Positions 5,005-64,000 of a DNA stretch of 64,000 nucleotides are shown piece after piece; within the stretch, counting starts at the first letter, position 1, and the number at the start of each line of letters is the position of its first letter. The DNA lies in the NCBI GenBank assembly GCA_020184695.1, contig JAANOX010000113.1, positions 1 through 64,000 of the forward strand, given 5' to 3'. The DNA comes from Histomonas meleagridis 2922-C6/04-290x (Eukaryota > Protista > Parabasalia). The notes beneath the pieces are model-generated. The model did not search any database and was not told where the DNA came from. It was given only the letters and a program-made list of their open reading frames with translations. The translations under genes were made by a program, and so were the position numbers.

Positions 5005-5011
5005 GAATCAA

Positions 5012-5016
5012 AGTGA
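5012..5016 (-). promoter_or_regulatory. Initiator (Inr)-like TCACT upstream of the EF2 ATG
   Basis: Minus strand ATTCACTTTGATTCATG matches the parabasalid Inr TCA(C/T)(T/A) close to the start codon. Confidence 0.6.
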
Positions 5017-23945: not shown

Positions 23946-26359
<2,414 letters not shown>

Positions 26360-26996: not shown

Positions 26997-27871
26997 TTAT
27001 ATAGAAAGTGCCTCTGAAATTTCCATACCAGCTCTGCTCATGTCTACTGAAACATATCGAGTATATGCAGAACTTTTCCACCTTCCATGGGCTTTTATGA
27101 TACAATCATTAACATTTTTTAGTGAGGCATAATATGCTGCTCCTATACGAGAACTATGAAATCCATAATTTTGATATTTTTCAACTCCAATAGTCCTAAG
27201 TACATAAAGAAGATGAGCTCTGAGTGTGGATTGAGTTCGAGATTCTATGTGATCATTACTAGAAATTAAGTTCAAATGATTTATAAATCGGAATGGGCTA
27301 TAATCTGTCTTATTATCATTAATATATGTAAACGTATTATTCCCGAACTGATCTGTTTTAGAAGTCTGTATGTTTAGTTTTATTAAGTTTTCGCCTTCAA
27401 TTACAATATCGCTTTTTTTAGAGTTTAGCGCTTCACTTATTCTGAGAAATGCTGCAAACATTAACGATATCAAGAATATAAACTTCAAATTATCAATATT
27501 TGTTGGTGGAAATTTTTCAATTATTTTCGAAAACCATTTTGGATCAAACGGTAACTTTGCATTTGGACAAAAACCTGAATATAGTGACCTTTTTATTCCA
27601 CTCTTAAATATTTTGAATTTTAATGAATGTGTTAATATTTCCAAGTCATTTTGTTGAAAATAATGTGTAAAACTATTAATGTAAGCTAGTAACGTACAAC
27701 ATTTCATATTCTGATTCTTTTTAAATATAATAAATGCAACCATTTTGTTATGAGTAATAGGAAATGGTTCTTCGTGTATTAGATTTATCATCACTTTGGC
27801 ATAAGCATGAATCAGCCTATCATATGTACTTTTCGTTCCTGCTGAAAAAAGTGTCGATGAGAATTACACAT
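26997..27871 (-). CDS. Tyrosine recombinase (phage_integrase fold); probable 1-nt frameshift near the 5' end
   Basis: Catalytic R (FLRISE), K (SKTDQFG), HxxR (FHSSR), H/W (HGRW) and Y (AYTRY). The frame extends upstream of the track's GTG start (SAGTKSTYDRLIHAY) to a TAA. An ATG at 27869-27871 is out of frame by one base across a T6 run. Confidence 0.88.
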
Positions 27872-27934
27872 AATAAAGGCAACTTTTTAAGACGATGACC
27901 AAAGTTCATCGTCTTAAAAAGTTGCCTTTATTAT
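27870..27934. repeat. Perfect 29-bp inverted repeat with 7-bp centre
   Basis: ATAATAAAGGCAACTTTTTAAGACGATGA (27870-27898), centre CCAAAGT, TCATCGTCTTAAAAAGTTGCCTTTATTAT (27906-27934). Confidence 0.97.
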
Positions 27935-28399
27935 TTGTGAAATATCAAATGATTAAAATAAACATAAAATAAAACAAATAAATATTTTTAGCATTAATAT
28001 CGATTCCTTCATGTTCAAGAAGTAATTTCACTATTTCTATATAACCATTTTCAGATGCTAATATAAGTGCTGAATAAAATAATTTAAATAATTTTCAAAT
28101 ATTATTTTGAAATATCAAATTATTAAAATAAATTCTAAATAAAACAAATGAATATCTTTAGCATTAATATCAATTCCTTTTTGTTTAAGAAGAACTTTTG
28201 TAACTTCAGAATGACCTTTGCGTGTTGCCCAATGAAGTGCTGTTTCATTAATTTTATATAAATTCCAAAAAAAAAAAATATTAAACGTTAAATCTTCATG
28301 ATAAATATATTTACCATTAATATCAAATATTTTCTGTTCGATTTGCCATTCAATAAATGATGCAAATTCTTTTTGGTGCTGAGAAAGCATCTGGTTTTA

Positions 28400-30510: not shown

Positions 30511-30621
30511 AAATTATTTAAATTATTTAGTACAGCACTTATATTAGCATCTAGAAATGGTCATACAGAAATAGTTAAATTACTTCATGGACAAAAGGGA
30601 ATTAATACTAAAGACATTTAT
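30511..30621 (+). pseudogene. Orphan single ankyrin cassette with both spacer ends
   Basis: AAATTATTTAAATTATTT (spacer 3' end), then STALILASRNGHTEIVKLLHGQKGINTKD, then ATTTATTT (spacer 5' end). Confidence 0.8.
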
Positions 30622-35400: not shown

Positions 35401-38400
35401 CTTTAACTTCTGGTTTATATAGTGATGATAATAAAACTTTTGAAGCTGCTTTAGACTTCCTTTATTCTTTATTAGAAACTCATCGAAAAGATATATTAAA
35501 TGATATCGAAATGATTTTAATTCAACCAGAAGCAAAACATTTTATTACACCAGAATTAAAATTAATTATTAAAAATATAAAAGAGAACAAACCATTTAAA
35601 TTAAATCACCAACAAAATGATCCAAAAATAAATATTAAAAAAGAAATTACACAACCAAAATTCACTTTCTCACAAGATTCAATTGTATTAAGAGCTATTA
35701 CACCTAATTTAAGTTTAAGTTGTAACTTAGAAAAATGGTTACATTCATTTGTTTTAGCTATAATTTCTAATTCTCCTTCGGATTCTATTCGAGCTTGTTC
35801 AGTATTAGCTTCTAATTATTATCCATTATCAATGAAGTTATTTAAACCAGCATTTTTAAGTTGTTGGTTAAAATTATCAGAACAAAATAAAGAACAAATT
35901 GCATTATCATTTAAAGATTTATTAAACTCAAAAGAAAATGATAAAACTATAGCACATGAAATCATAAATTTATTAGCTTTTATGAATCAAATCGAAAAAC
36001 CTATTGGTATACCATTAAATGAATTAGTTAATGAAGCTTTAGATAATGGATCTATAGCATTTGCATTAAAGATTCAAACAGAAATTATTAATCAATCAGA
36101 GAAATCGAATTCTATTAAAGATAATGAAATATTAAAATTAATTGATATATATTTACGACTTGGAGATCATAGTGATGCTGTTGGAGTCTGGAAACATTTC
36201 AAAATGAAATCGACAACATTAAATAATCCAGATATATTAGCTAAGTTACGTATGTGGGATAAAGTTGAACCAATTTTTGAAGAACGATATAAAAAGGACA
36301 AAAGTTTTAAGACGTTTTTAAGTTTAATAAAATCAATGTCAGCATTAGCAGAATGGAATCAAATTATACCATTAATGAAAGACTTTAATAATTTACCATT
36401 ATTTCAAAAGCAATCAATTGCATCATATTTTGCAGAATCATTATTTTATACTGGAGATTGGGAACAATTAAAAAACATATTAAAATATTGTTCTGATGAT
36501 TCTTCACGTTGTAATGTATTAAATGCATTATGTGCATTACATGATAAAGATTATGATAAAGTTGATGAATGTATTACAAAAGGATTTTCTTTATTAGCTT
36601 CTAAACCTATAACATTTCGTTCTTCTGATAATCAAAGAATTCAAACAGATATAATTCTTGCATGTCAAGAATTAATAGAAATTAGTGAAATGAAAGATTG
36701 GTTAAAAGGTTATAATCGAAAAGAAATCGAAGAAGTATGGGATAATAGACTTTTAACATCTCCACGTGTATTTGATTTATGGTTTGAAATAATATCAAAT
36801 CGAATTGTTATCACAGGAATTCGAAATGAAAAATTAGTGAAGTTTTTCACACTTAAAAGTCCTGCGTTAGGTACACAAATACATAAAAATGCACTTCGAA
36901 TGATATTTCCAATGATGGAAAAAGAATCATTGAAAGAACCAGAATTATTTAATGTTTGTTTAGCTGTCGAACATTGGATTACTGGTGAAAAAGATAAAGC
37001 TCTAAATGAAATGAAGAAACTTACTGAAATCATAAGTGGTAACTTACGAATTAGTTGTCAATTTTTATATTCGAAATGGATTTTATCCACAAATGAATCT
37101 ATTGAAGAATTAAAAATTGCTTATGATCATTTGAAAGGTATTATTTCGGAGCATAATTATGATCAAAAGTTATATAATATATTAATGAAGAATCAAAAAG
37201 GTAATTACTTCTTACCAAATGATATCTATAGTGAATTAACAGGTAGTTCATTAAATGTTGATATATTACGGAAATGGTGTAATGTAAACGTAGCATTAAT
37301 ATCTTTAGATAAAGAAGAAAATATTGTAACACATGTAAAGAATGCTATCGATGCATTAACTAAATGTGTTTTAACTACACAAAGTTTTCCTGATTTAGTA
37401 CAATTATTAAATTTGTTCTTTAAATATGCCGATCACAAAGAAATGTTTAATTCTACAGCACATTCATCAATCGAAAAATTACCTGCGAAACAATTGTTAC
37501 AAGTATCGCATCAATTACTTGTACAATTAAGTCATTCCACACCAGAAGTTGCAGAATATGTACATAAAATTATATATAATTTATTAAGGGAACATTATCA
37601 TGAATTAATATTTATGTTGTTCGTATTAAAGAAATCCATCTGTAAAGAAAGAGCTGATTCTGCTAAAATGATTCTCGAAGAATTTCGTCTTGAAAAACCC
37701 GAAATTTATAACGAAGTAGTTTTAATACGTAAAAGTTTATTACGTGCAACTGTGACTTGGCCTGAAAGAGTTTCTCAATATATTTTAGATGCTTCCGAAT
37801 TTTATCACAAACAATCATATGAAAAAATGAAGAACTCACTCGTCTCCATTATAAATCTTGTGAAAACTCCGAAGTGTCAAATGCATTATCGATTTTTGGA
37901 TACTTTCGGTAATTACATTAAAACGTTAGAAGGAATGTTGCCTTATTTTAACGCAAGAAATAAATTCCAAAACTCAATAAATAGAGTTATAGCTTGGTGT
38001 AAAAGTGTACAAGCTGCTTTAGATGAAGAACTGAAACAAATTCATACAATTGAGCTTTCCGCAATTTCGAAAGAATTGAGTGAAAAAACTGATTTTCATT
38101 TGGCGGTTCCCGGAACTTATAAACCGGGGCACCCTACAATAACGATACAATATTTTGTGGGACAATTGTCGGTTTATATGTCAAAACAGTTACCGAAAGA
38201 TGTAATAGTGAAAGGTTCTGATGGTAATTATTATCAATACTTATTGAAAGGTCATGAAGATATGCGTTTAGATGAACGGATAATGCAGTTCTTTAGGTTA
38301 ATTAATTCACTTTTAATGAAAGAAACATTTTTCAATCAAAGATTTATCCAAATTATTAGTGTAATACCATTGTCTATAGGACATGGCTTAGTTCAATGGG

Positions 38401-39224
38401 TACCAGGAACTGAAACATTACGAAAAGTTGTCGAAAAAATTCGAACCGTTCATGATGTGGATCAAATGAAAGAATTTGATTTACTTATGCAATATTCTAA
38501 TGAAATCTTTGACAATCTTTTACCCATCCAAAAGCTTCAAGTTTTTGAGCGCATATGTAATGAAGTTCCAGATACAGATATTGCCGATTTCTTTTGGCTT
38601 AAATCGGAAACATCTGAGTCATGGGTTAAAAAGACATTAACATTTTCTATCTCATGTGCAGTTAATTCTGTCGTCGGTTATATCATAGGATTAGGAGATC
38701 GACATCCATCCAACTTATTGATCGATTCTAACACTGGCAGAGTTGTCCACATCGATTTTGGTGATTGTTTTGAGAAGGCAGCAAATCGCGATTTCTTACC
38801 GGAAGTTGTACCATTCCGTTTAACGAGGCAAATGGTAAGAGCTATGGGCCCTGCCGGTGTTGATGGTGTATTTAATAACGCATTTGTGAGTATGTCGAAT
38901 ATTTTGAGAGAAAATTGTGATGTGCTTGTGACTGTTTTAGCTATTTTTGTGCAAGAGCCTCTTGTAAATCCGGATAGACCACAAAAAACGAAGAGGTTAT
39001 ATTCGAGTGAGAAATTAGGCAGCGTTGCAGTGAAAGCTGAGAGACAAAGGAAAACGAATTCGAGTGTGCAAATGAGAAAAAGAGTGCATCAAAAGTTAAC
39101 GGGAATGGATTTCGGTAATGATGTGCCAATGTCTGTTGAGGAGCAAACGAATAGATTAATAGAAAACGCTACAAGTCCAATGAACTTGTGCAGAATGTAC
39201 TCGGGATGGTGCCCGTTCTGGTGA
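32418..39224 (+). CDS. TOR: TOR-like PIKK kinase (paralogue A)
   Basis: HEAT/FAT region, LAVPGTY, KGHEDMRLDERIMQF, GLGDRHPSN, HIDFGDCFE, PEVVPFRLTR, FATC LCRMYSGWCPFW. Confidence 0.95.
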   Translation: MNIKNLPIPKTFTKMVEAYELYYEKFYLEVVRMSNVSLNEYIHSYISLLTELSKYDLNSDDAIRSAMGIVALNSIGYDNFSELTQIFDRLLPQTSMERIKFTSWCVGELIHHPNSEQSRYVSHLFERLVKWTRSYGRRARLHAASRMLSVLSANAGSEVVTFYSSFQSILWNIISHSSIAIIKATVDAISMFTRAMIRYRRSDLSEYLSFTTNLSSKLLTYDDPINEYAGIMILNTLIQSKPDFFTSRFDILCSEFIPKLSPDRKLIVRSISYVAITSLALVDSKQFTDSIAQILFKPIEGESSYTNALITEFPKEISKSIILLIKTIPNFFKDKLEMIVNYIVILYNIEPDCAFDMLFNFIKTYDEIVFPLISDLVINLLKCDMTKGYCRFILEITKFEKHITDEFREQLTNYLLKQFENQKITIHVLKMISKLPRYSINRHNELFEELKDLSLSKDEQIRIHLPYSIFNIVQYLDDSVPKEEIRSLFFRIAVFDNCIAVRKSVLIILRDHNPSFLGIPEYMKYLQIVANDDAMSIRKLSFQILENVYDINPIFVSSINRTALLDSFFILRYVSSIRQRGRIVRVLPKVIKSSSNMITAYSNEIIKIFLNVLKEYKTSNMKFSNFLEIKAYYKFFKGMIKTMSLLAPLDPEQVSKHTDEIIPCLCSLLNNEQERKVVLSVLKLLHVLLSAPASTILYRAKGPLILASCSRFLEITHSRKVRMALLRVIGSLGVIDIHQKSTIKYCRTPENIDQDLARKFFHPSREIDGVIDETLLFKNDTTEHYFIDVAASSLLDIFYDNKLKEFYIMTVQALVIILSNPKMHMLSHFDSFIVRLLSVMENSTNLELKTYLPLYSQLIMNSTHNTLPFVSRSLKLVKDKFCVELAIEILDLILAFLKTIKDGFTKYASETICLLIGCLDDSKTSNVMISHHVLKAFSMLGLYVQDLLYLIVPQICDAIECEHSLKEVKVYAFYSLRDLSHAVNLTHYFGPIMRALTSGLYSDDNKTFEAALDFLYSLLETHRKDILNDIEMILIQPEAKHFITPELKLIIKNIKENKPFKLNHQQNDPKINIKKEITQPKFTFSQDSIVLRAITPNLSLSCNLEKWLHSFVLAIISNSPSDSIRACSVLASNYYPLSMKLFKPAFLSCWLKLSEQNKEQIALSFKDLLNSKENDKTIAHEIINLLAFMNQIEKPIGIPLNELVNEALDNGSIAFALKIQTEIINQSEKSNSIKDNEILKLIDIYLRLGDHSDAVGVWKHFKMKSTTLNNPDILAKLRMWDKVEPIFEERYKKDKSFKTFLSLIKSMSALAEWNQIIPLMKDFNNLPLFQKQSIASYFAESLFYTGDWEQLKNILKYCSDDSSRCNVLNALCALHDKDYDKVDECITKGFSLLASKPITFRSSDNQRIQTDIILACQELIEISEMKDWLKGYNRKEIEEVWDNRLLTSPRVFDLWFEIISNRIVITGIRNEKLVKFFTLKSPALGTQIHKNALRMIFPMMEKESLKEPELFNVCLAVEHWITGEKDKALNEMKKLTEIISGNLRISCQFLYSKWILSTNESIEELKIAYDHLKGIISEHNYDQKLYNILMKNQKGNYFLPNDIYSELTGSSLNVDILRKWCNVNVALISLDKEENIVTHVKNAIDALTKCVLTTQSFPDLVQLLNLFFKYADHKEMFNSTAHSSIEKLPAKQLLQVSHQLLVQLSHSTPEVAEYVHKIIYNLLREHYHELIFMLFVLKKSICKERADSAKMILEEFRLEKPEIYNEVVLIRKSLLRATVTWPERVSQYILDASEFYHKQSYEKMKNSLVSIINLVKTPKCQMHYRFLDTFGNYIKTLEGMLPYFNARNKFQNSINRVIAWCKSVQAALDEELKQIHTIELSAISKELSEKTDFHLAVPGTYKPGHPTITIQYFVGQLSVYMSKQLPKDVIVKGSDGNYYQYLLKGHEDMRLDERIMQFFRLINSLLMKETFFNQRFIQIISVIPLSIGHGLVQWVPGTETLRKVVEKIRTVHDVDQMKEFDLLMQYSNEIFDNLLPIQKLQVFERICNEVPDTDIADFFWLKSETSESWVKKTLTFSISCAVNSVVGYIIGLGDRHPSNLLIDSNTGRVVHIDFGDCFEKAANRDFLPEVVPFRLTRQMVRAMGPAGVDGVFNNAFVSMSNILRENCDVLVTVLAIFVQEPLVNPDRPQKTKRLYSSEKLGSVAVKAERQRKTNSSVQMRKRVHQKLTGMDFGNDVPMSVEEQTNRLIENATSPMNLCRMYSGWCPFW

Positions 39225-44508: not shown

Positions 44509-45367
44509 TAATCAACAGATACAATTGTATGAAAACCGAAAAACATAATCAAAATTGAATGAAGGAAGATTCACACCATTTTTAGGTAAAAAATTGTTTC
44601 ATTCATGTTTGATCTTAAAAATTCAACAATATTTACAACAATGACTATTTTAAAACTTTAAACCTCGGAATAATTATTCATTAAAATTTTAATGACACAT
44701 CTCAATAATTTTAATATTATGATTTGAAGAAGGAAAATCATACTTTTAGCTTTAATAATTTAAGGTTTGTTATATTAATATGTTAAAAAATTAATAGAAA
44801 TTTTAATTAAAATCATGATCATGAATTTTTTTTTATAATAATGTAAGCCGTAATTAAATATGTTAACCCCATTCATGCAAATGATTTCTGTATATTTAGA
44901 AGTTGCTAATCTTAAATATTGGTATTATGATCTTTAATTTCTTTATTATTGAAAAGGTTTTGAAGAACAAAAGAATAAAATATTATCTAAGAATGGTAGA
45001 GACATTTCTTTCTTTACGGATTTGTTTTTATTTATCATAAAAATGATACAATGAATATTGATGAGCAAAAAAAATGCATCATTCTTTACAAAATTATTAT
45101 TTTAGAAGAACGTATTTGCCGACGTATTATGTACATTTTGGAGAAACTTGAGTTTTTTATTTGAGTATATAAAAATTTGATTCTGGGCTACTTCCACAGT
45201 TTTTATTTCAATGTGAAACGATAATTTTTTTCAATGAAACTTTTCACAACAAGGTTTACGATACATGACTTTCTTTCAAAATTGAAGCATTTTGACTGGG
45301 TGGTTAGCATACAAAAAGTGACTTTTTTTTGGGTAAAACAAACGGATTTCATTTTAGTCTTTTCCAA

Positions 45368-48034
45368 ATGTCCGAAGGAAATACCGCTGATCCAGCATCT
45401 TATGATAATCTATCAGATACAGAAATCGATCCTGAAGATCTTTTTAAAGCAGATCCGTTAACTGTTTATCCTGACCTCATTATGGAGAACTTAAAGAAAA
45501 CAAGAAGGAGGGTAGGCGATGTATCACTGGCAAGAATGAATAGAAGAAAGCACAAAGATGAAGTTGATGCCAAGAATAGACACTCTCAACAAGTATCTGC
45601 TCCTCCAATAATTCCAGAAAAGAAACCAGCTCGTGTTCCAATGCCTGGTATGATGCCAATGCCTGGAATGGTTCCCATGCCTGGAATGGGTGCTAGACCT
45701 CCACTTAAAAAGATTCCAGGAATGGCACCAATGCCAGGAATGGGTGGAATGGATTTAAGCAACAACCCTCTTTTCAAGAAAAGAATGGCAAAGAAAGCAG
45801 AAACAGAAGGCGAATCCGAAGAAGCTAAGAAGAAAGCTGAAGAGGAAGAAGCTAAGAAGAAAGCTGAAGAAGAAGAAGCTAAGAAGAAAGCTGAAGAGGA
45901 AGAAGCTAAGAAGAAAGCTGAAGAGGAAGAAGCTAAGAAGAAAGCTGAAGAAGAAGAAGCTAAGAAGAAAGCTGAAGAGGAAGAAGCTAAGAAGAAAGCT
46001 GAAGAAGAAGCCAGACTTAAGGCAGAAGAAGAAGCCAGACTTAAGGCAGAAGAAGAAGCCAGACTTAAGGCAGAAGAAGAAGCCAGACTTAAGGCAGAAG
46101 AAGAAGCACGTCTCAAAGCTGAAGAAGAAGCAAGACTTAAGGCAGAAGAAGAAGCAAGACTTAAGGCAGAAGAAGAAGCACGTCTCAAAGCTGAAGAAGA
46201 AGCAAGACTTAAGGCAGAAGAAGAAGCCAGACTTAAGGCAGAAGAAGAAGCACGTCTCAAAGCTGAAGAAGAAGCAAGACTTAAGGCAGAAGAAGAAGCC
46301 AGACTTAAGGCAGAAGAAGAAGCACGTCTCAAAGCTGAAGAAGAAGCAAGACTTAAGGCAGAAGAAGAAGCAAGACTTAAGGCAGAAGAAGAAGCTAGAC
46401 TTAAGGCAGAAGAAGAAGCTAGACTTAAGGCAGAAGAAGAAGCTAGACTTAAGGCAGAAGAAGAAGCTAGACTTAAGGCAGAAGAAGAAGCAAGACTTAA
46501 GGCAGAAGAAGAAGCACGTCTCAAAGCTGAAGAAGAAGCTAGACTTAAGGCAGAAGAAGAAGCACGTCTCAAAGCTGAAGAAGAAGCAAGACTTAAGGCA
46601 GAAGAAGAAGCTAGACTTAAGGCAGAAGAAGAAGCTAGACTTAAGGCAGAAGAAGAAGCTAGACTTAAGGCAGAAGAAGAAGCTAGACTTAAGGCAGAAG
46701 AAGAAGCAAGACTTAAGGCAGAAGAAGAAGCACGTCTCAAAGCTGAAGAAGAAGCTAGACTTAAGGCAGAAGAAGAAGCACGTCTCAAAGCTGAAGAAGA
46801 AGCAAGACTTAAGGCAGAAGAAGAAGCAAGACTTAAGGCAGAAGAAGAAGCTAGACTTAAGGCAGAAGAAGAAGCCAGAAAGAAGGCTGAGGAAGAAAGA
46901 CTCAAAGCTGAAGAAGAAGCAAGACTCAAAGCTGAAGAAGAAGCAAGACTCAAAGCTGAAGAAGAAGCAAGACTCAAAGCTGAAGAAGAAGCAAGAAAGA
47001 AGGCTGAGGAAGAAAGACTCAAAGCTGAAGAAGAAGCCAGAAAGAAGGCTGAAGAAGAAGCAAGACTCAAAGCTGAAGAAGAAGCCAGAAAGAAGGCTGA
47101 GGAAGAAAGACTCAAAGCTGAAGAAGAAGCAAGAAAGAAGGCTGAAGAAGAAGCAAGACTCAAAGCTGAAGAAGAAGCCAGAAAGAAGGCTGAGGAAGAA
47201 AGACTCAAAGCTGAAGAAGAAGCCAGAAAGAAGGCTGAGGAAGAAAGACTCAAAGCTGAAGAAGAAGCAAGAAAGAAAGCTGAGGAAGAAGAAAGACAAA
47301 GAGAAGAAGAAAGAAGAAGAGCTGAAGAAGAAAGACAAAGAGCAGAAGAAGAGCGCAAAGCCATTGAAGAATCCAGAATCAAAGAGGCAGAAGACGAAGT
47401 CGAAAGAATTAGAAGGGAAGAACAAGAACAACTCACAAGAATCAGCGAAGAAGGTCAAATTGATACCAAATTTATTATTGTTGGCGATTCCAATGTTGGC
47501 AAGACCTCACTCACATCTCGTTTCATCAGCAACAGCTTCACCAAAGCCAGCAACACAGCAGCCTTTGATGTATCAGAGAGGACCATTCTCCATAATGACC
47601 GTCGCGTCAAAGTCAGTGTATGGGACACTGCAGGCCAAGAGTCCTATCAATCACTTGTTCCGAAGTATTATCGTGGTGCGAATGTAGCTATCATTGTGTT
47701 TTCATTTGACCAACGATCATCACTTGAAAATGTACAAAATTGGTACAATGCAATTGTTGAGCAAACGCAAAACCCAATTATCTGTCTCTGTGGTAACAAG
47801 AAGGATATTCCAGAAGATAAGCGCCAAGTGACATCCGATGAAGGAATTGCATTAGCGCAAAGACTTGGAATTGAATATTATGAAACAAGCGCATTCAAAT
47901 GCATTGGAATTGATCCAATGTTTAGATTACTTGCTGGTAAATATGCAGATATGTCTCCACTGGAAAAGACAGAAAAGCAGCCAACGCCAATAGAACCAGT
48001 GCCACAACCACCTCGATCATGGTGCTCCTGCTAA
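45368..48034 (+). CDS. Giant Rab-like GTPase: Pro/Met/Gly-rich segment, long E/K/R repeat helix, C-terminal Rab domain
   Basis: First ATG gives MSEGNTAD; (KAEEEARL)n; [24 protein letters not shown]-terminal CSC. Confidence 0.9.
45824..47290 (+). repeat. Coding minisatellite: 27-bp (AKKKAEEEE) x6, then about 36 24-bp (KAEEEARL) units, then mixed 21/24-bp units
   Basis: Direct inspection of GAAGAAGAAGC(C/A/T)AGACTTAAGGCA and GCACGTCTCAAAGCT variants. Confidence 0.97.
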
Positions 48035-54070: not shown

Positions 54071-57000
54071 ATGATTGATAACGAAAACGTAGGAATAAAA
54101 GTCCGTCATTTTATCAATGAAGTCACAAACCAACTTTCTTCATATAACAAACTCGAATTTAAGATTTTGATGCACAAATTCGAAGTATTTATCGAACAAC
54201 AATATCTAATCAAAAAAGAGCAAAATACAGTCCAAGACTTCTTTACAGACGTTTTCGGAGAAATCAACAGAGAAGGTAATTCATGTACCAACATAATTCT
54301 TCTTAACTCATTAATTGGAATTGATTTAGGAAATAAAATCCAAAAAGCTAACCGTATAATTCATATATTAGAAAACACTCAACTAGTTACCACTAAGGTT
54401 TTCTGGCATTATTTAAATCGAGTTATTCTTTGGTTAAAACGAACAGTTCCGAAATCAATTGAAGGTGTTTTAGTACCTTTTATTGATGCAATTCAATTAT
54501 TTGCACAAAAAAAGAAAGAAGGTATTTCTCCAACTATAGCTTTTACATCTCTTACCATGTTATATAATCATTTTCCAACATATATAAATTCACTTGTATC
54601 AGATAAAACAATTTTAGCAGTATTTCAAGCAGGACTACAAGAGCCATCACCAGAAGTCTTAGAGTGTGGTTTAGAAGCTCTTAAGTGTGCACTTGATAAC
54701 ATCGATACTTGTCATTTCCCAATCAATATTTTATGTCAAAATCTCATGACATGTATCAACAGCAATAAGGCAGATTCGATTGAGATTGCTTGTAAGGCCA
54801 TCGAACTTATCATTGCATCTGATTCAAATAATATCAATTTTTTGAAATTTAATTCAGTTCCACTTAACTTCTTCTCATCTAAAGAACCTGCAGTTAAACT
54901 TGCTGGATATCAAATTCTTCCACTTTGTTATGTCTGTAATCCTGGACTTTTTACAGATGATATAAATGTTTCAATATTAAAAGCATTTACACCTCAAATC
55001 CGAAAAAAGGTTCAAAATCGCAATGAGGCATTGCTTAGCTTAGGTAATTATTTATTTGCACGTAAAGGAGTTGTATCTAAATCTGAAACTAAACGTCTTG
55101 ACAAATGTCGTAAAAGTGTTGAAGAATTAATTGATACTGACCAAGCAGCATATTGTTATACTGCTATTCTTACTACAAATGAAGAGTTATTTGGCAAACA
55201 CATCAACGTAGTCTTTAACGTTCCCCTATCGTCCCGGCTAATTGAAGGGCTTGTTAATTGCAAGAAAATTTTACCAACACATTCAGAATTTTTAGATCAA
55301 CGAGTTTTATCCATTGCTAATACGATATTGTTAGATGGTTCATCATCACCTACTTCAATTATTAATGCATTTGAATGTTTAGAAAAGATGGGAATTCCAG
55401 TTGAATCATATTCAGTTGAATTAGTCTTACAATATTCATTATTAATGACAAATAAGAATTTTAGTACACGAAAAGCAGCATCACGATTTGTCTTATGGTA
55501 TCAAAAGAAGAATCCAACAATTGAAGTAGTTCAACGAGTTTTAGCAGTTATTTCCACTGAAAGTAATAATGAACATCAACAATATTTAATGAAGAACTTA
55601 ATGAAACATCCATCAGATGAAAGCATATTACCATTTTTACAATCATTATTACATGATTTAACAGCAGAAATACGCTTAAAAGCATTAAAATATATTGCAA
55701 AGTTAACACATATTAAAGAAGCATCGGAATTATTAAATGATTTTCTTACTGAAAAAGTTCATGATTTAGAACATTCGAATGTTATTTATAAGGAACATAT
55801 TGAATGTTTCTTATATGTATCACATGCAGCATTTTCTGATCCTAAAAAGATCTTTGCTGAACATGCAAAACAATTACTTGTACCATTTGCGCAATTTTTA
55901 ATTAATTATTTATTAAATTCTACACAACCATTATTTACAGCAGCGATACAATTATTAGCACAAATATTACCATTATCACCACAAGCAGTTAATATTGATA
56001 AGTTAGCAAATCATATTAATAATTGTTTATTAATTCATGCGTCACAAAAGAAAATTAATGCTGCACGAAACTTATTACAATCAGCATTAGATTATACTGA
56101 TTTAAAGTTTAGTATATATGGACCACAACGTGATTTAATTATTCGATTATTTGATTTATCAAGTGTACAAACTAATGAAGAATCACGAGTTAAATTCCTT
56201 AAGTTATTAAGTTCGATTGGACCTTTATCACCACGAATTGTATCTGATTTACATACACAAACACAAACTGATTCAGAAACTCCTTCATTAAATACGCCTA
56301 ATATTTATTTAACTAAATATACACCAGATGAAGCAATTGAAGCATTAACAATGGCTTCAGTAGGTGTAGCATCATTAAATTTATTAGATATATTATTAGA
56401 AGATAATTTATCTTCATTACATTCGATAGCAATTGAATCATTTTTAAATATATTACGTGCACATAGATTTATGATTACTGAAGAACTTGAAGCAGAAATC
56501 TTAAAACGAATTACATTTATGATTACATCTAATAATGCTTCAACTATTTCTGTCTTAATTAAAAACATGTCAACATTAATAACAGTTTTAGGTGAACGAT
56601 TTACACCATTAGTACCACATGCAGTTGATTTAATATGTAATAATTGGACTAAATTAGATCAATCACTTTTAACACGTATTTCTAATTGGATGATGTTATA
56701 TTTACCTGATGCATATATTCCACATTTACCACGTATTGCAAGTTTATTTGTTAAATATTTAACACATTCTGATATTAAATATGTTACAACAATATTATTA
56801 GCAGTATATTCATTTGGTTTAGCAGTACAAACAGTTGATCATATATTATATCCACCTTTATTAAGTTGGATATCTAATCATGCTAAAGAATCAATTGGTG
56901 ATATGTTATCCACATTAAAAGATATATTAGTAAATGGTGGAGCACAAAAGTTTTCATCACAAGTATTACGAACTATGATTCATATAGTTCAAATGAATCC

Positions 57001-60000
57001 TACATTACATGATAAAGCTTTAAACATAGTATTTGTAGTTGGTATTCATTTAGAACAACAATTTTTATTATATATACCACATTTAACATCTGTTTTTAAT
57101 TTTTATAATAATACTAATTTAAAGGCTTATATATTATGTTTAGAAGCTGGTGAAAAACCACCCGATTATATCATTAATCCATTTCAACCGAATTTACCTT
57201 CATCACATGATCGTACTAAATCATCTAAAAATATGTCATTAAATAATGATATACCTAAAATTGATTTCCCTAAACCACAAGCAGATTTTGATGAAAGTCA
57301 ATGGATTAAATGGTGTGATGAATTGTTTTCATTATTAGTACGATATTCTTCATCACGTGCAATATCTGCATGTGATACAATCATTGAAAAACATTCTGGT
57401 ATACGTGAAGCTTTATATCCTATAGCATTTGCATTATTTTATTTCCAATTAAAATCAGTGAATAATGATTCATTAGATGTAATATTAAATCAATTCTTTC
57501 ATTGTAATGGTACACCTCGTAATGTAGTTCGACATTTTTTAGATGTAATTGAAATAATTGAAGTTATTGGAGGTCAAAGTTTAATTAAAAATGAAATAAT
57601 TACTGAGAAAGCTCAAGCTGCTGATAGAATTGCTCAAGCGTTAAGAGCTTCTGAAGAATTATTTGATATTTGTGATAATTCACAAACAGAGAAATTAATT
57701 GTATTTAATCAACAATTAGGTTTACCTTTAGCTGCTAATGGTATTTTACGAATTACTAAACAAAGAGGTTTCCCTACTAAAGCAATATTATCAGAAAGTT
57801 TAGGATTATGGGATGAAGCATTAACATTATATAGTAATGACTTAGAGAAATCACCTAAGAATGAACAATTATATAAAGGTAAACTTAATTGTTTAAGAGC
57901 ATTATCGAAATATTCTGAATTAAAGAAAGCATCGAATGGTAAAAATTGGATATTATATAAAGCAGCAGCAGAATGGCGATTATTTGAACGTGATGAATTC
58001 TTAAGTTCTACGAAACAATTAAATAGTAATGATACTTTAGATGGATTATATTATCGAAGTTTATATCATACTATTAAAGGAGAATATGATCAAGCAGAGA
58101 AATTAATTAATCAAATGAGAATTAAATATTCCGATTTAATATTCCCAATGATTTCTGAAGATTATGAACGTGTTTATAATAATTTTTCTAAAGTTTCTTA
58201 TGGAACTGAAATCGAAGAAGTTATACGTTATTTGAAGATTAAAAAACAATTAGAAAATGCCGTATATGAAGAACGTATTAATTTAGAAGAAGAATTAAAA
58301 CGTATTATTCATACATGGCAATTACGATTTTCGCATTTACCTAATGATCCTGAGATAATGCATGAAACTTTATGTATTCGATCATTAGCATTAAATATTA
58401 CTGATTTAAATAATGAATTTAAGAAATTCTTAAAATGTTCAATTAAACAAGGAAAATATGACTTAGCTAATGATACATTAAATTATCTTAAAAATAATAA
58501 TAAAAATTATGAAAATTCGATTTTCCAATTAATGGAATGTCGATTATTATGGGCATTAAATAAGAAAGAAGAAGCAATCGAAAAAATACCATTAAATAAT
58601 GAAATGTCTCATTTAATTATTGGTAAATGGCGAATGGAAATGAATCAATTAAATGAATCATATGAACAATTTAAATATATAATTACAAACAAGAATAACA
58701 TTACATCTGATATATGGTCATTATGGTCACAAGTTAATTTACAATTATATGAAGAAACTAAAGAAAATTCTTATTTAACAGAATCATTATGTGGTTTATT
58801 AAATGGTTTATCATTAAATCAATCAGATCCATTACCATTTACTTTACGAATTTTATCCATATTATTTAGAAGAGGTAACATTGAATTATATAAGAAGTTT
58901 AATGATAATATTTCATCTTTACCTGTATCAGTATGGATTGATGTCTTACCACAAATTATCGCAAGATCAAATTCGACTGATTCTAATTTACGGAAATTAA
59001 TTCAAGAATTAATTAGTATTATTGGCTTACAACAACCTCATGTAGTATTATATTCATTAATGGTCCCAATTAAAGATGATACATTAAGTGATCGTAAAAG
59101 AATTGCTACTTCTATCTTTAATCGATTACGAATTCGTTATCCAACAATTGTTAAACAAATATTAACATTAGCTAATGAATTAATCCGTACAGCAGTTTCA
59201 TGGTGGGAAATGTGGTATTCGATATTAGATGAAGCTTCACGTGCTTATATCACACGTAAAGATAATGAAGAAATGATAAATTTATTATTACCTTATCATA
59301 AACTTATTACAAATAAACCCGAAACATTTTATGAGATAATATTTGAACGACAATTTGGACAAATATTATCAATATCAGAATCATGGATTAAGAAATATAA
59401 AGAATTAAATACTGACGAATGTTTATTCCAAGCATGGGGGAATTATATTAATGTATTCCATAAACTTAAGCCCATAATTAATGACTTAACAATAATATCA
59501 CTTAAAGATGCTTCACCTTTATTATATAATCTTAAAGATACTCAACTTGTAGTACCTGGTACATATAAATTTAATCGACCATTAATTAACTTAACTTATG
59601 TAGATCCGACAATGACTGTCATGAAAAGTAAACAAAGGCCTCGACGAATGGCATTAATTGGTAGTGATGGAATTAAATATACATTTTTATTAAAGGCGCA
59701 TGAAGATACTCGATTAGATGAACGTGTAATGCAATTCTTTACTTTAGTTAACTCATTTGTATTACATTCGACAATGCCATTAAAGAATAAATTAGGTATT
59801 ACTACTTATAAAGTTATACCATTAACTAATGAAGTAGGTTTAATAGGTTGGGTACCTGAATGTAATACTTTATATGATCTTGTTAAGAGTTATCGTGAAA
59901 AACATAATGTACCATTAGAAATAGAATATCAATCGACTTATAAAATGTGTCCGAAGTTCGAATCGTTACCATTTTGTAATGAGAAATTAAACGCGTTCCG

Positions 60001-60643
60001 TAAAGGATTAAAAGTACAAAAAGGTAACGACTTGAAACATATGATATTCGCTTTAGCTGATGATTCCAATCATTGGATCGAACGTCGAACAACTTATACA
60101 ACTTCATTAGCAATGACTTCGATGGCTGGTTACATATTAGGTTTAGGTGATCGACATATGTGTAACATAATGATCAAGAAAAGAAGCGCGAAATTGGTGC
60201 ACATCGACTTCGGCGATTGTTTCGAAGTCGCTATGCATAGAGATAAGTTCCCCGAAGTTGTTCCATTTAGGTTAACGAGAATGTTACAAAACGCTTTGGA
60301 AGTAAGTCGTATCGAAGGAACGTTTAGGAGCTGTTGTCAAAACGTTATGGAATTGTTGAGGAAAAACGGTAACACAATCATCGGATTGTTGGAAGTGTTC
60401 ATTTATGACCCGCTGAGACAATGGATATGTGAGAACAAAGAAGTGGAAGTGAATGATAATAATAACCAAGAAAGTTCCTCCGCAATTTTGATCATGAATA
60501 GGATTAAGGATAAGTTAAACGGAGGAGATTTCGAGCCTGGCGTACTGTTAAGTGTGAATGATCAAGTCGACAAATTAATCGCTCAAGCGTCAAGTGTAAG
60601 GAATTTATGTATGATGTTTAGAGGGTGGTTCCCCTGGTGGTAA
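54071..60643 (+). CDS. TOR: TOR-like PIKK kinase (paralogue B)
   Basis: FRB WWEMWYSILDEASRAY, LVVPGTY, MKSKQRPRR, KAHEDTRLDERVMQF, GLGDRH, HIDFGDCFE, FATC LCMMFRGWFPWW. Confidence 0.96.
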   Translation: MIDNENVGIKVRHFINEVTNQLSSYNKLEFKILMHKFEVFIEQQYLIKKEQNTVQDFFTDVFGEINREGNSCTNIILLNSLIGIDLGNKIQKANRIIHILENTQLVTTKVFWHYLNRVILWLKRTVPKSIEGVLVPFIDAIQLFAQKKKEGISPTIAFTSLTMLYNHFPTYINSLVSDKTILAVFQAGLQEPSPEVLECGLEALKCALDNIDTCHFPINILCQNLMTCINSNKADSIEIACKAIELIIASDSNNINFLKFNSVPLNFFSSKEPAVKLAGYQILPLCYVCNPGLFTDDINVSILKAFTPQIRKKVQNRNEALLSLGNYLFARKGVVSKSETKRLDKCRKSVEELIDTDQAAYCYTAILTTNEELFGKHINVVFNVPLSSRLIEGLVNCKKILPTHSEFLDQRVLSIANTILLDGSSSPTSIINAFECLEKMGIPVESYSVELVLQYSLLMTNKNFSTRKAASRFVLWYQKKNPTIEVVQRVLAVISTESNNEHQQYLMKNLMKHPSDESILPFLQSLLHDLTAEIRLKALKYIAKLTHIKEASELLNDFLTEKVHDLEHSNVIYKEHIECFLYVSHAAFSDPKKIFAEHAKQLLVPFAQFLINYLLNSTQPLFTAAIQLLAQILPLSPQAVNIDKLANHINNCLLIHASQKKINAARNLLQSALDYTDLKFSIYGPQRDLIIRLFDLSSVQTNEESRVKFLKLLSSIGPLSPRIVSDLHTQTQTDSETPSLNTPNIYLTKYTPDEAIEALTMASVGVASLNLLDILLEDNLSSLHSIAIESFLNILRAHRFMITEELEAEILKRITFMITSNNASTISVLIKNMSTLITVLGERFTPLVPHAVDLICNNWTKLDQSLLTRISNWMMLYLPDAYIPHLPRIASLFVKYLTHSDIKYVTTILLAVYSFGLAVQTVDHILYPPLLSWISNHAKESIGDMLSTLKDILVNGGAQKFSSQVLRTMIHIVQMNPTLHDKALNIVFVVGIHLEQQFLLYIPHLTSVFNFYNNTNLKAYILCLEAGEKPPDYIINPFQPNLPSSHDRTKSSKNMSLNNDIPKIDFPKPQADFDESQWIKWCDELFSLLVRYSSSRAISACDTIIEKHSGIREALYPIAFALFYFQLKSVNNDSLDVILNQFFHCNGTPRNVVRHFLDVIEIIEVIGGQSLIKNEIITEKAQAADRIAQALRASEELFDICDNSQTEKLIVFNQQLGLPLAANGILRITKQRGFPTKAILSESLGLWDEALTLYSNDLEKSPKNEQLYKGKLNCLRALSKYSELKKASNGKNWILYKAAAEWRLFERDEFLSSTKQLNSNDTLDGLYYRSLYHTIKGEYDQAEKLINQMRIKYSDLIFPMISEDYERVYNNFSKVSYGTEIEEVIRYLKIKKQLENAVYEERINLEEELKRIIHTWQLRFSHLPNDPEIMHETLCIRSLALNITDLNNEFKKFLKCSIKQGKYDLANDTLNYLKNNNKNYENSIFQLMECRLLWALNKKEEAIEKIPLNNEMSHLIIGKWRMEMNQLNESYEQFKYIITNKNNITSDIWSLWSQVNLQLYEETKENSYLTESLCGLLNGLSLNQSDPLPFTLRILSILFRRGNIELYKKFNDNISSLPVSVWIDVLPQIIARSNSTDSNLRKLIQELISIIGLQQPHVVLYSLMVPIKDDTLSDRKRIATSIFNRLRIRYPTIVKQILTLANELIRTAVSWWEMWYSILDEASRAYITRKDNEEMINLLLPYHKLITNKPETFYEIIFERQFGQILSISESWIKKYKELNTDECLFQAWGNYINVFHKLKPIINDLTIISLKDASPLLYNLKDTQLVVPGTYKFNRPLINLTYVDPTMTVMKSKQRPRRMALIGSDGIKYTFLLKAHEDTRLDERVMQFFTLVNSFVLHSTMPLKNKLGITTYKVIPLTNEVGLIGWVPECNTLYDLVKSYREKHNVPLEIEYQSTYKMCPKFESLPFCNEKLNAFRKGLKVQKGNDLKHMIFALADDSNHWIERRTTYTTSLAMTSMAGYILGLGDRHMCNIMIKKRSAKLVHIDFGDCFEVAMHRDKFPEVVPFRLTRMLQNALEVSRIEGTFRSCCQNVMELLRKNGNTIIGLLEVFIYDPLRQWICENKEVEVNDNNNQESSSAILIMNRIKDKLNGGDFEPGVLLSVNDQVDKLIAQASSVRNLCMMFRGWFPWW

Positions 60644-60972: not shown

Positions 60973-61419
60973 TTACTGTGGCGCCAAATCAATCTGTCAC
61001 TTTTTGTTTGATGTAGAACGTCACTTTTTTGTTAAACTAAATTCAAATTTTGTCAAAAATTTTATAAGTGGTTTCGACCAAATATTGATTGAAAAATAAA
61101 CTATGTAAAGTTATGAAATGAAGTGAATGAGAATATTACCAACTTTTTATCGAAACAGATAATATCAATTTTAATTTATCTACTGTTTAAAGCTTGACGA
61201 CACTTCTGCGTATATTTATTTATGGGAAATTTTCCGAAAGTTTTAACTTTTTTTAAAAAACATACATAATGCTCATATGAATATAGACAATATAATTTTA
61301 TTTTTTTTCTTTTTGATATTTTATGTGTCTATGCAAGAAAAAGTGACTACAAAATTTCTCATTGGACGTCTCCAATTCGGATCCACTCTTTTTATACCTA
61401 AAAAAAATTATAAATTTTA

Positions 61420-63408
61420 TTATTTAGTGTGTTGATTTATGTATTGTTCAAAAAATTCAATTGTTTCATCGCAACAATAAGATTTTGCTAAATCAAACGC
61501 TGTTTCAAATAATTTTATTATATTCCAAATGTTATTAAGAATCATCAAATTGTTAAAATAAATATTAAATAAAATATTTTAATATTTTTGGGATTTACAT
61601 CAATTCCATCTTGTTCAAGTAATAGTTTAACAATATCAACGTTATTATACTCAGAAGCAAACATAAGTGATGTATAATATGATGTTAATAATTTCCAAAT
61701 ATTAGATTTGAAACCCAATATTATGAGTATAAATATCGAATTAATTAAGTAAACATTTTTATAATTAATATCAGTTTCTTTTCGTTTAAGAAGAATTTCA
61801 ACAATTTCAATGTTACCATTCCGAGATGCTTTCATAAGTGCAATAGTATATACTATATTAGTAATATATAAATTACTATATTAAAATATATATTTTAAAT
61901 TAACACCAAAAAATATTATGAAACATCAAATTATTGAAATAAGTTTTAAACAAAACATATAAATATCTTTAGCATTAATATCAATTCCTTCCTGCAAAAG
62001 AAGCAATTTAACTATTTTTGTTTTACCATATTTAGATGCAAACATAAGTGCTGTTTGGAATAATATAAATAATTTCCAAATATTTTTTATAAATATTAAA
62101 AAATTGAATAAAATCTTGAATAAAACAAATAAGCATCTTTAGTATTAACATCAATTCCTTTATGTTTAAAAAGTAATTTAACTATTTTTGTATGACCTTT
62201 TTTAGATGCAGTCATAAGAATTGTTTCAAATAGCTTAAATAAAATCCAAATATTATTTTGATATATTAAATTATTAAAATTAATTTTAAATAAAGCATAT
62301 AAATATCTTTTGCATTTACATCAATTCCATAGTTAATAAATAAATTTACTATTTCTGAAAAATTATTTGCACATGCAATCATAAATGCCGTATTAAATAA
62401 TATAAATGATTTCCAAATATTTTTTTGAAATATCAAATTGTTATAATATACATCAAATAGAACAACCAAATATCTTCAATATTAGTGTCGATTTCTTCTT
62501 GTTCTAGAAGTAATTTTACGACTTCAACATTATTTTTTTCAGTTGCTAATGTAAGTGCTGTTTTATGATTTTATATTTAACATCAAAATTTGGTTATAAA
62601 TTTCAAAAATATAAAATAAACATCAAAAAAATGAAATAAAAATTTTGATCATTAAGATTAAAACATTTTTTTCCAATAAATAATTTAACGATATCTAAAT
62701 TTCCATTAGCACATGAATCATAAATGCATTCCAACATTATTTATTCTAACATTATATTTCATTTTGAAATTTCAAATAACAAAAATTATTATCAAGCAAA
62801 ACAAAGAAAAATCCAATGCATTAATTTCAATTCCTTTATAATCAATAAGATGTTTATCTGTTTCAAAATGATCATTTTGAGTAGCTAACATAAGTGCTGT
62901 TTCATTTGGAAAGACTCCAATAAATATAAAGAAATTTTAAATTATTCATACAAAAATTCAATTTAATATAAAAATATTTGCAATATTTACTTTAATATTC
63001 TTTTGATTAAGTAGTAATTTAACAACTTCAATATGACCATTATATGATGCATCCATAAGTGGCGTCCAAAACAATTCAATTAAATTCCAAGTATTAATAA
63101 TAAATATTAATTCATTAAAACAAAAATTTTATTATATAAAAAAGTATTTTCATTATTAATATTAATTTTATCATGTTTAAGCATTAACTCTACTATTTCA
63201 ACATGACCATAATGTGAAGCTAAAGAAAGTGCTGTATCAAATATATTTAATAAATTCCAAATAAATTATTGAAGTTCGAAATAGTTAAAGTTAATTTTAA
63301 CTTTTGTAAAGAAATATTTTTATCATTGAGTTGAATATTTTTTTGTGCAAGAAACAATTTTGCAATTTCTAAAAACCCATTTTCACATGCAGCAATTAAA
63401 GGAGTATC
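61420..63408 (-). repeat. Ankyrin cassette array 3: 12 diverged ankyrin segments and 11 spacers
   Basis: Segments mostly 93 nt; spacers from left to right 77, 78, 117, 77, 77, 77, 77, 77, 72, 77, 77 nt. The terminal segment ETAFDLAKSYCCDETIEFFEQYINQHTK* ends at 61420-61422. Confidence 0.88.
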
Positions 63409-63432
63409 AAAAAATTATGATAAATTTTATTT

Positions 63433-64000
63433 AACGGTATGAAAAATTAGATATATAAAATAAACTTTAATAAATAAACTAGTTCCAAAAAATGGAAAGC
63501 ACGATAGAGAACGATAGAAATCAGATGGAAAGCTGGTCGTTGTTAGGATTTTATCTAGAAGATCCAATAAAAGCCAATATTGCTCAAAAAACATACCCAG
63601 GAGTAATGCATGATGAAAATAAAAATCAAGCGATTATAAGAATCAGAAGTTTCGGATTTACATATCGCGATATTGAACATTGTCTAAATACATCACAAAA
63701 GCATATTACATTAGTACTTAAAGAATATCAGCTAAGCGGAGAAGTTTCTTGTAAAAAGAGGGGAAGACCTCTAAAAATTGATAATAATGATAAAGCAAAA
63801 ATTGATGAAATAACCATCTCATCACCAAGGTCAACTTGCAAGCATATTTCACAACAAATAAGCAGTCCAGAAAAATCAATCAAAAAATCAACTATTGCAA
63901 AAATCAGACATGAATTACATTTTTTTTTCAAACCACCCAAAAGGAGACCTCAAATGACTCAAGCATGCTTGGATAGAAGACTTACTTTCGCTTATTCTAT
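63433..64000 (+). mobile_element. Tc1-like DNA transposon, 5' part; left boundary approximate, runs off the window
   Basis: The ankyrin spacer pattern stops at about 63433 and a transposase ORF follows. Confidence 0.65.
63492..64000 (+). CDS. Tc1-family transposase N-terminal region (partial; absent from the ORF track because there is no stop in the window)
   Basis: Hand translation: HTH-like GFTYRDIEHCLNTSQKHITLVLK, KRGRPLK, KSTIAKIRHELHF, KPPKRRPQMTQACLDRRLTFA. Confidence 0.8.
   Translation, partial: MESTIENDRNQMESWSLLGFYLEDPIKANIAQKTYPGVMHDENKNQAIIRIRSFGFTYRDIEHCLNTSQKHITLVLKEYQLSGEVSCKKRGRPLKIDNNDKAKIDEITISSPRSTCKHISQQISSPEKSIKKSTIAKIRHELHFFFKPPKRRPQMTQACLDRRLTFAYS

Follow-up and report, generated by a model that had tools for sequence, protein, structure and literature searches.

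Ultrashort introns are known from mikrocytids, where they measure 16–17 nucleotides (nt) and have GT...AG ends (PMC10245619), and, by the figures quoted in PMC12316389, from Stentor (15–16 nt) and the Bigelowiella nucleomorph (18–21 nt). Among parabasalids, Trichomonas vaginalis and T. stableri carry GT/AG introns of two types, A and B, at 63 per genome and with none shorter than 23 nt (PMC12316389). The genome paper of Histomonas meleagridis describes introns as scarce, with no more than one in any gene, and says nothing of ankyrins (PMC8529796), and a 2026 paper on the Tritrichomonas foetus genome regards none of the predicted introns as validated and suggests that they be filtered by motif (PMC13735942). 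Here we analyse an ankyrin-repeat array at positions 61420–63408, on the minus strand, of a 64,000-nt stretch of H. meleagridis DNA (the first 64 kb of contig JAANOX010000113.1, assembly GCA_020184695.1; hereafter the window). The array is a copy of a gene of the trichomonad DUF3447-ankyrin family, in which each inter-repeat loop is broken by tandem ultrashort intervening sequences. We conclude, with a probability of about 0.8, that in this gene family of H. meleagridis segments of 17 nt are cut from the RNA while the single-codon micro-exons between them stay. A full-text literature search returned no account of 17-nt non-GT-AG introns or of tandem single-codon exons.

The segments resemble the introns of mikrocytids, Stentor and Bigelowiella in lying at the lower limit of length, in their narrow size range (17 nt, rarely 18, within the 15–21 nt of that class), in being cut from mRNA and in not being a multiple of three. 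Known ultrashort introns, however, have GT...AG ends and a strongly conserved internal sequence and occur singly across many kinds of gene, whereas the Histomonas segments have mostly AT...TT ends, are degenerate, stand in tandem with 3-nt exons and, in the window, lie in ankyrin loops only. With Trichomonas type B introns (23–25 nt) they share the phylum, a very short length and a T-rich middle, but they lack the extended 3′ motif (A/T)CTAAC...AG of Trichomonas introns. U12-type introns have their 3′ cut chosen largely by distance and tolerate several terminal dinucleotides, and the segments are like them in beginning with A or G followed by U; U12-type introns are, however, defined by a 5′ site RTATCCTT and a branch site TCCTTAAC, neither of which is found in the segments, and are neither so short nor tandem. 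The non-canonical introns of Fritillaria borealis and the nonconventional introns of euglenids are abundant, nuclear, non-GT-AG and precisely removed. They are longer and variable, and those of euglenids need an end-pairing structure, whereas no structure is seen in Histomonas, where alone a fixed 17 nt is combined with single-codon exons. The 3-nt micro-exons of animals and plants are likewise single codons spliced in frame, but they are rare and isolated, have long canonical introns around them and need special enhancers; in Histomonas every repeat of the gene family has three to six of them in succession, at 17-nt intervals. Finally, tRNA bulge-helix-bulge introns and the IRE1-dependent introns of HAC1/XBP1 (about 20–26 nt in some species) are short and non-GT-AG, some of them in mRNA, but need a bulge-helix-bulge or twin hairpins with CNGNNG loops, and the Histomonas segments have neither the structure nor the motif.

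Architecture of the ankyrin array

The array consists of 12 ankyrin cassettes, A to L, and 11 spacers. Counted from the last D/N codon of a cassette to the codon preceding T-A/P-L of the next, spacers 1 to 11 measure 77, 77, 72, 77, 77, 77, 77, 77, 117, 78 and 77 nt; a recount thus agrees with an earlier note on this sequence, which had found 8 of 11 to be exactly 77 nt long. Five 93-nt cassettes score 27–34 bits on Pfam Ank (PF00023) over profile positions 3–32, above the curated cut-off of 21.1 bits, as expected of an ankyrin gene. Each 77-nt spacer divides into 17+3+17+3+17+3+17, with most cut points unambiguous (shift ambiguity 0–1 nt), and Tandem Repeats Finder reports 20-nt periods within spacers. 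Altogether the array holds 43 removed segments, 42 of 17 nt and one of 18 nt.

The ankyrin loop is encoded by the single triplets between the 17-mers, with K/N first, D/N second and Gly third; readings include KRG, NNG, DDG, KNG, KNG and NDG, followed by one codon and T-A/P-L. The second triplet is GAT or AAT in most spacers. The third encodes Gly (as GGA, GGT or GGG) in 9 of the array's 11 spacers, and it does so in 12 members of a non-redundant set of 17 spacers taken from four sources. Positions 1–2 of the Ank profile (d, G), which are absent from the cassettes, correspond to the second and third isolated triplets. The central conserved motif that had been noticed in the spacers, ATTTGGAA, is real; it runs from the last letters of the third 17-mer through the Gly codon GGA into the first letters of the fourth. 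Putting the nine kept letters at either spacer end instead gives hydrophobic triplets such as ISL and IYM, unlike an ankyrin loop.

The cassettes are 64% identical in nucleotide sequence among one another, and the removed segments are 61% identical within a position class, 55% between classes and 44% when shuffled. The array is therefore strongly diverged, in cassettes and spacers alike, as had been proposed. The ratio of nonsynonymous to synonymous differences among cassettes (pN/pS) is 0.76, a weak and saturated comparison.

The segments are present in DNA and missing from RNA

A conceptual transcript, made by deleting the 17/18-mers alone, was compared in its coordinates with public RNA contig records; contigs rather than reads were aligned to the locus, and four runs of H. 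meleagridis behave as RNA. Three RNA runs supply five contig records that align to unique cassettes at 0 mismatches, with the 17-mers missing. Contig coordinates equal those of the model at all seven covered spacers (1, 2, 3, 4, 5, 10 and 11), which comprise 27 segments. Window positions 62918, 62811 and 62472 were predicted at, and are found at, positions 344, 451 and 654 of X1 rec5; the same agreement holds for 61506 and 61408 in X1 rec4 (249 and 347), for 61676 in X2 rec9 (125) and for 63238 and 63156 in X2 rec11 (77 and 159). In X2 rec9 and X4 rec22, 8 letters stand between 61754 and 61676, as predicted (G|AT GGG GGA|TAT). The same removals recur in three to four independent RNA runs.

RNA covers the array and the neighbouring mTOR-like gene, and depth is 0 in the flanks 61077–61260 and 63653–63836, because of which the RNA runs are taken to be free of detectable DNA. 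Of the 31-mers of the array, fractions of 0.98 and 0.93 occur in DNA runs from two samples and at most 0.35 in the RNA runs, which is about the ceiling for cassette-only words. The segments thus behave as introns: they are in genomic DNA, they are missing from RNA and their flanks are joined at the predicted coordinates. Since the triplets stay, the message consists of 90-nt helix-helix exons and 12-nt loops.

Contig depth over the array is 3–75, against 200–350 for the mTOR-like gene in X1. Highly expressed paralogues cross-map to cassettes H–I and have 12–14 letters between cassettes, encoding N-R-G-N or x-Y-G-N; the mature messages of the family therefore have a 90+12 structure. Across 61813–62364 the RNA word depth reaches 10^4–10^5, from paralogues at 90% identity or more, and an ankyrin family with cassettes like these is among the most abundant transcripts of the runs. 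A protein database queried with the 96-residue read-through open reading frame (ORF) 61545–61835 gave no transcript-derived protein of the locus, and a search with the N-terminal ORF of the first array of the window gave genomic read-through models only and no spliced proteins.

Units of the array and their state in RNA

Starting from the 5′ end, cassette A (63316–63408; GAT plus 90 nt, read D TPLIAACENG...NDKN) matches the Ank hidden Markov model and lies inside contig X1 rec5. Spacer 1 (63239–63315; 77 nt, 17/AAA/17/CGA/17/GGA/17) is parsed into 17-mers at 63315–63299, 63295–63279, 63275–63259 and 63255–63239, and both X1 rec5 and X2 rec11 fit its removal. It is followed by cassette B (63146–63238; GAT plus 90 nt, 29.5 bits on Pfam Ank), by spacer 2 (63069–63145; 77 nt, 17/AAT/17/AAT/17/GGA/17), which is removed in X1 rec5 and runs into TGG ACG CCA (G-W-T-P-L), and by cassette C (62976–63068; TGG plus 90 nt, 33.5 bits).

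Spacer 3 (62919–62975) has three removed segments in 57 nt, 17/AAT/17/AAA/17, as position 344 of X1 rec5 requires. In place of a fourth 17-mer stands GGA with a 12-nt remnant (62904–62918), in frame and reading G V F P N. The remnant is kept in RNA, giving G-V-F-P-N-E ahead of T-A-L, and the piece 62811–62918 is contiguous with 0 mismatches. Cassette D (62811–62903; GAA plus 90 nt) precedes spacer 4 (62734–62810; 77 nt, 17/GAT/17/GAA/17/AAT/17), and the 108 nt that X1 rec5 has between 62811 and 62566 are the sum of 9, 92 and 7. The 92 are those of cassette E (62642–62733), which is 1 nt short of the usual 93, with a change of frame between WNAFMI and SCANGNLD; the length of the RNA contig shows the same deletion. 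Spacer 5 (62565–62641; 77 nt, 17/GAT/17/GAA/17/GAT/17) is removed in X1 rec5, and cassette F (62472–62564; AAA plus 90 nt) is met in RNA pieces of X1 rec5 and X4 rec23.

Spacer 6 (62395–62471; 77 nt, 17/GAT/17/GAT/17/GGA/17) has no unique RNA piece among those listed; cassette G (62305–62394; AAT plus 87 nt) is one codon shorter than the others; spacer 7 (62228–62304; 77 nt, 17/AAA/17/AAT/17/GGA/17) follows from the parse. After cassette H (62135–62227; GAA plus 90 nt, 27.2 bits) an RNA joint from 62057 to 62135 skips the 77 nt of spacer 8 (62058–62134; 17/AAG/17/AAT/17/GGA/17), at a depth mixed with that of paralogues. Cassette I (61965–62057; CAA plus 90 nt) scores 34.4 bits. The first 77 nt of spacer 9 (61888–61964; 17/AAA/17/GAT/17/GGT/17) have weak RNA evidence, X1 rec4 opening with 3 unaligned letters and then 61888, as a junction at this point would give. 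Between them and cassette J lies an extra insert of 40 nt (61848–61887) that reads ATT TTA ATA TAG... and breaks the frame. It is kept in RNA with its stop codons, the piece 61754–61888 being contiguous with 0 mismatches.

Cassette J (61755–61847; ACT plus 90 nt) has RNA pieces in X1, X2 and X4. Spacer 10 (61677–61754; 78 nt, 17/GAT/18/GGG/17/GGA/17) contains the one 18-nt segment, which is removed from RNA. After cassette K (61584–61676; TAT plus 90 nt, 31 bits) comes spacer 11 (61507–61583; 77 nt, 17/AAT/17/GAT/17/GGA/17); the 110 letters of X1 rec4 between 61754 and 61506 are the sum of 11, 90 and 9. The last cassette, L (61420–61506; GAA plus 81 nt, E TAFDLAKSYCC...HTK), ends on the stop TAA at 61422–61420 and is covered by an RNA piece, 61408–61506, which carries the 3′ untranslated region to at least 61408. 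Cassette L had been called a typical terminal cap: it does close the reading frame and begins as a repeat, T-A-x-x-L-A, but has no Pfam match, so that the label is one of position.

A decaying copy that is still transcribed

The frameshift that the earlier note placed in 62642–62733 is real, and RNA agrees with it. It had been taken for the only lesion; the 40-nt insert brings stops, and the frameshift is therefore not the sole one. The first in-frame stop of the conceptual transcript falls at residue 153, no in-frame ATG was found ahead of cassette A, and no intact ORF spans the array from a start codon down to its last repeat. On the 5′ side the array adjoins part of a Tc1/mariner transposase, an N-terminal portion at 63492–64000 on the plus strand (Pfam HTH_Tnp_Tc3_2, E = 1.4e-08; RNA depth about 0) that runs past the end of the window. 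Because of this neighbour, the 1-nt deletion, the retained stop-bearing insert and the missing ATG, the locus is a copy in decay; low-level transcription persists, and so does the excision of its intact 17-mers. Pieces of altered length, the 12-nt remnant and the additional 40 nt, are no longer removed.

Indels usually occur at 0.05–0.2 per substitution. At about one substitution per site, most neutral 17-mers should therefore differ in length; apart from their common end motifs, 17-mers of the same class are near saturation, yet 42 of 43 measure 17 nt. Selection on spacer geometry, as the earlier note had put it, thus stands in that length is kept beyond the neutral expectation, but the unit is four 17-nt segments and three codons, and not the spacer. 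Of the two outcomes named there as counter-evidence, a neutral indel rate in the spacers and an untranscribed locus, neither was found, and its view of the spacer system as functional held: the spacers are processed in RNA. As this array is itself not well kept, its length conservation is largely inherited from a functional past.

The same layout at other loci

Of the window's 18 gaps between cassettes (spacer plus codon), 14 measure 80 nt (77+3). Arrays 63–1092 and 26642–28243 have the same 17/3 parse as 61420–63408, and Tandem Repeats Finder gives a 170-nt period for 61420–63408 and for two further arrays of the window. The layout n × (17+3), with n = 3, 4, 5 or 7, is also met elsewhere in Histomonas and in two relatives known from metagenomes, with spacers of 57, 77, 97 and 137 nt. 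In a virulent strain of Histomonas, locus L001 has gaps of 80, 100 and 140 nt, with four 77-nt spacers after gene model P0136; those of its second array, 140 and 100 nt, equal seven and five 17+3 units, so that spacer length is quantised in 20-nt steps. Two metagenome contigs, L006 and L012, have a 4 × 17 layout with gaps of 80 or 81 nt and one 18-mer; their 17-mer sequences are unrelated to those of the window, and their proteins were not found in the Histomonas assemblies. The narrow length distribution (17 nt, rarely 18) thus extends to L001, L006 and L012. In Tritrichomonas foetus (locus L007), cassettes past the end of gene model TRFO_29908 lie 42–49 nt apart with a central GGN, and their sequence suggests that these loops probably hold two segments of 18–20 nt each.

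Sequence of the removed segments

Letter statistics were taken over 68 non-redundant segments, and folding was computed for 17 non-redundant spacers with flanks. The consensus, R-T-T-T-A...A-T-T-T, is U-rich, starting with A/G-TTT and ending in TTT. Segments open with a purine in 96% (A 42, G 23, T 3), the letters 2–4 are T in 79–90% (90% for the second), with T-T-T-A at positions 2–5, and 62 segments close with T and 5 with C. A is found at position 14 in 62% and at positions 10–11 in 54–60%. Overall the segments are 58% T and 5% C, and the kept triplets are 76% purine. The first and last letters of a segment would be able to pair in 93%, and four of the five C-ending segments begin with G, a weak hint of a coupling between the two ends. 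No conserved secondary structure was found: RNAalifold returned an open chain at 0.0 kcal, and the mean z-score of the minimum free energy was +0.18.

Mechanism and alternative explanations

As the most likely candidate for the machine that removes the segments we propose a modified spliceosome, at slightly short of even odds. The segments would be spliced out after transcription, by intron definition and with a ruler for length. R-U-U-U would mark the 5′ end for recognition, the A at position 14 (−4) or those at positions 10–11 would be candidate branch points, and the 3′ cut would be placed by distance (17 nt, rarely 18) and not by AG. The 17+3 units have multiplied in tandem, to 3, 4, 5 or 7 per loop, along with whole 170-nt repeat units.

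Several observations weigh against the proposed reading, or against parts of it. The segments lack GT-AG ends: of the 68, 38 open with AT, 20 with GT and 10 with another dinucleotide (GC in 2), the last dinucleotide is TT in 51, AT in 11 and TC in 4, and none closes with AG, so that U2-type ends (GT/GC...AG) are not found. The trichomonad intron motif GTAYGT ... ACTAACACACAG is not in the arrays, the window as a whole holding 2 matches with 2 mismatches where 3.0 are expected. Given these ends and the missing motif, a spliceosomal mechanism is far from assured. The 23-nt motif does not suffice to specify the sites, as 53 windows in 31.9 kb of intact long ORFs outscore the 10th percentile of the true sites, and 3 outscore the median; context must therefore contribute. 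A good-looking 17-mer upstream of cassette A (63425–63409; ATTTATCATAATTTTTT) is kept in RNA, in a piece of X1 rec5 that is contiguous over 63315–63448. At the locus, contig coordinates set how many letters are removed and kept, not which ones, and the 17/3 placement rests on protein logic, conservation and the junction letters of paralogues. Finally, the runs carry the guessed label 'RNA?', and the contigs have no strand information.

A serious alternative, less probable than the spliceosome, is a dedicated non-spliceosomal machine, either a length-measuring endonuclease with an RNA ligase or a trans-acting RNA or ribonucleoprotein guide that reads the cassette ends and the periodic U-rich units. 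Histomonas and its relatives may, on this account, have a hitherto undescribed RNA excision–ligation system, distinct from the spliceosome, which measures U-rich stretches of about 17 nt flanked by purine triplets and depends on the tandem arrangement or on the ankyrin context; each codon of the target-binding loop would be its own exon. Such a machine would suit ends that are degenerate (first letter A, G or U, last U or C), a segment length that is almost constant where the sequence is not, a motif that is insufficient by itself, sites confined in the window to tandem clusters in ankyrin loops, and the retention of an isolated 17-mer that has no upstream cassette. No machine of this kind is known, however, and the folded spacers offer it no conserved bulge-helix-bulge or twin hairpin. 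The purine at the first position and the T at the second recall the R-U 5′ ends of spliceosomal introns, and the possible pairing of first and last letters also speaks against a dedicated machine.

That the spacers are never removed, the contigs coming from a spacer-free paralogue (processed or retro-copied) with identical cassettes, is very improbable. The evidence consists of contigs, the family is large and its paralogues cross-map at 90%, with huge depth over 61813–62364. Yet the contigs carry the private marks of this locus at 0 mismatches, namely the cassette E deletion, the 12-nt remnant and the 40-nt insert, as well as its flanking non-coding DNA at 63409–63448 and 61408–61422, and an unprocessed spacer would not explain an in-frame triplet layout kept across loci and species. 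We give just as little credence to the idea that the 77-nt spacer is indivisible, whether as DNA-level geometry, an integron-like recombination or attachment site for cassette shuffling, or one conventional intron. Its constant length would fit, as would mobile elements in spacers (the Tc1/mariner part next to 63409 and an element with a 33-nt hairpin at 27866–27938), but nine letters of each spacer are kept in RNA, so that it is not removed whole, lengths move in 20-nt steps (57, 77, 97, 137 nt), the spacer ends are not GT-AG, and other placements of the kept letters give hydrophobic loops (ISL and IYM from the 5′ end). Least probable of all is an artefact of reverse-transcriptase template switching or of de Bruijn assembly jumps: non-canonical 'introns' in RNA sequencing are often template switches (PMC6679479) and this sequence is AU-rich and repetitive, but most cut points lack microhomology, independent runs show the same removals, these are exactly the ones that restore the ankyrin frame, and the evolutionary conservation of the layout stands apart from any RNA data.

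Other candidates were rejected. GT-AG introns with shifted exon borders fail in a hand parse, in which GT falls at no consistent position and AG is usually lacking. Programmed DNA elimination of the ciliate type (internal eliminated sequences) does not agree with DNA runs that keep the spacers (0.93–0.98), with boundaries that are not TA...TA or with a parabasalid organism. A ciliate genetic code and an origin from a giant virus were dismissed because the long ORFs are eukaryotic housekeeping genes and EF2 places the window in Parabasalia, and translational bypassing, as in T4 gene 60 and the yeast mitochondrial byps, because the segments are missing from RNA contigs.

Genomic setting

The window is AT-rich (22–35% GC) and holds long unbroken eukaryotic genes, among them two mTOR-like kinases, EF2 and FERM, DENN and BEACH proteins. 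Its EF2 is 80% identical to that of Trichomonas gallinae and 75% to that of T. foetus, and the exact protein is encoded at 2279–5204 of JAANOX010000113.1 (GCA_020184695.1) and in GCA_020186115.1. The gene of the first array has DUF3447 and Ank domains. All 17-nt sites found in the window lie inside ankyrin loops, in tandem clusters only; no 17-nt elements were found at the junctions of split ORF pairs at 49.5 kb, 11.4 kb and 32.3 kb or in the gap of the BEACH gene.

Within the third 17-mer of a spacer, an insert of about 1.04 kb (26892–27941; ORF 26997–27794, no Pfam match) divides one ankyrin array into 26642–26865 and 27984–28243; one of its ends has a hairpin (27866–27938) with 33-nt arms that are 97% complementary. 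A lone ankyrin cassette at 30532–30609 (plus strand), with a fourth-type 17-mer before it and a first-type 17-mer after it, is an orphaned piece of an array that was split.

The two mTOR-like genes, 32418–39224 and 54071–60643 (both plus strand), are intronless PIKK paralogues with FAT, FRB, PI3_PI4_kinase and FATC domains, 15 kb apart. The BEACH-domain gene (23946–26359, plus strand) is broken, with an in-frame TAA for the conserved Tyr of QYPVFPW near 25064 and frame shifts near 25230, and is either a pseudogene or an assembly error. A long ORF at 45329–48034 (plus strand), with about 55 copies of a 24-nt period (AEEEARLK-like) and a 27-nt period, encodes a charged stretch resembling a single helix. 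A pogo-like DDE_1 transposase (9905–11982, plus strand) is present as two overlapping ORFs with a frameshift near an A-run, and the sole Rfam match in the window is a tRNA gene at 20233–20304 (plus strand).

Discussion

Current gene annotation misses the 17-nt segments of Histomonas, and intron pipelines filtered by motif would discard their sites. In Histomonas, P0136 (L001, region 5516–6200) is truncated and reads into the first 17-mer, and the start of the next L001 gene model, 6097–7614, falls in the last ankyrin cassette; in T. foetus, TRFO_29908 (P0159; L007, region 3635–4110) is truncated at the first spacer. Since ankyrin models of Histomonas and Tritrichomonas stop at the first 17-mer in this way, the largest protein family of these parasites is mis-annotated.

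The segments are introns in kind, and a new machinery behind them is a real possibility. If the proposed reading is true, they would be a further intron lineage at the extreme short end, beside the 15–17-nt introns of Stentor and mikrocytids, in the densest micro-exon arrangement that we know of. Precise RNA excision could then rely on length and on the contrast of U with purine, and not on GT-AG, which makes testable the question of the least information that a splicing machine needs. Skipping a micro-exon would take 17+3+17 nt from the primary transcript and 3 nt from the message, so that all combinations stay in frame, and one gene could yield combinatorial variants of ankyrin loop length and sequence. 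Parabasalids are textbook examples of intron-poor organisms, yet a large gene family of theirs would hold three to seven 17-nt non-GT-AG introns per repeat, and such sites could be very many genome-wide.

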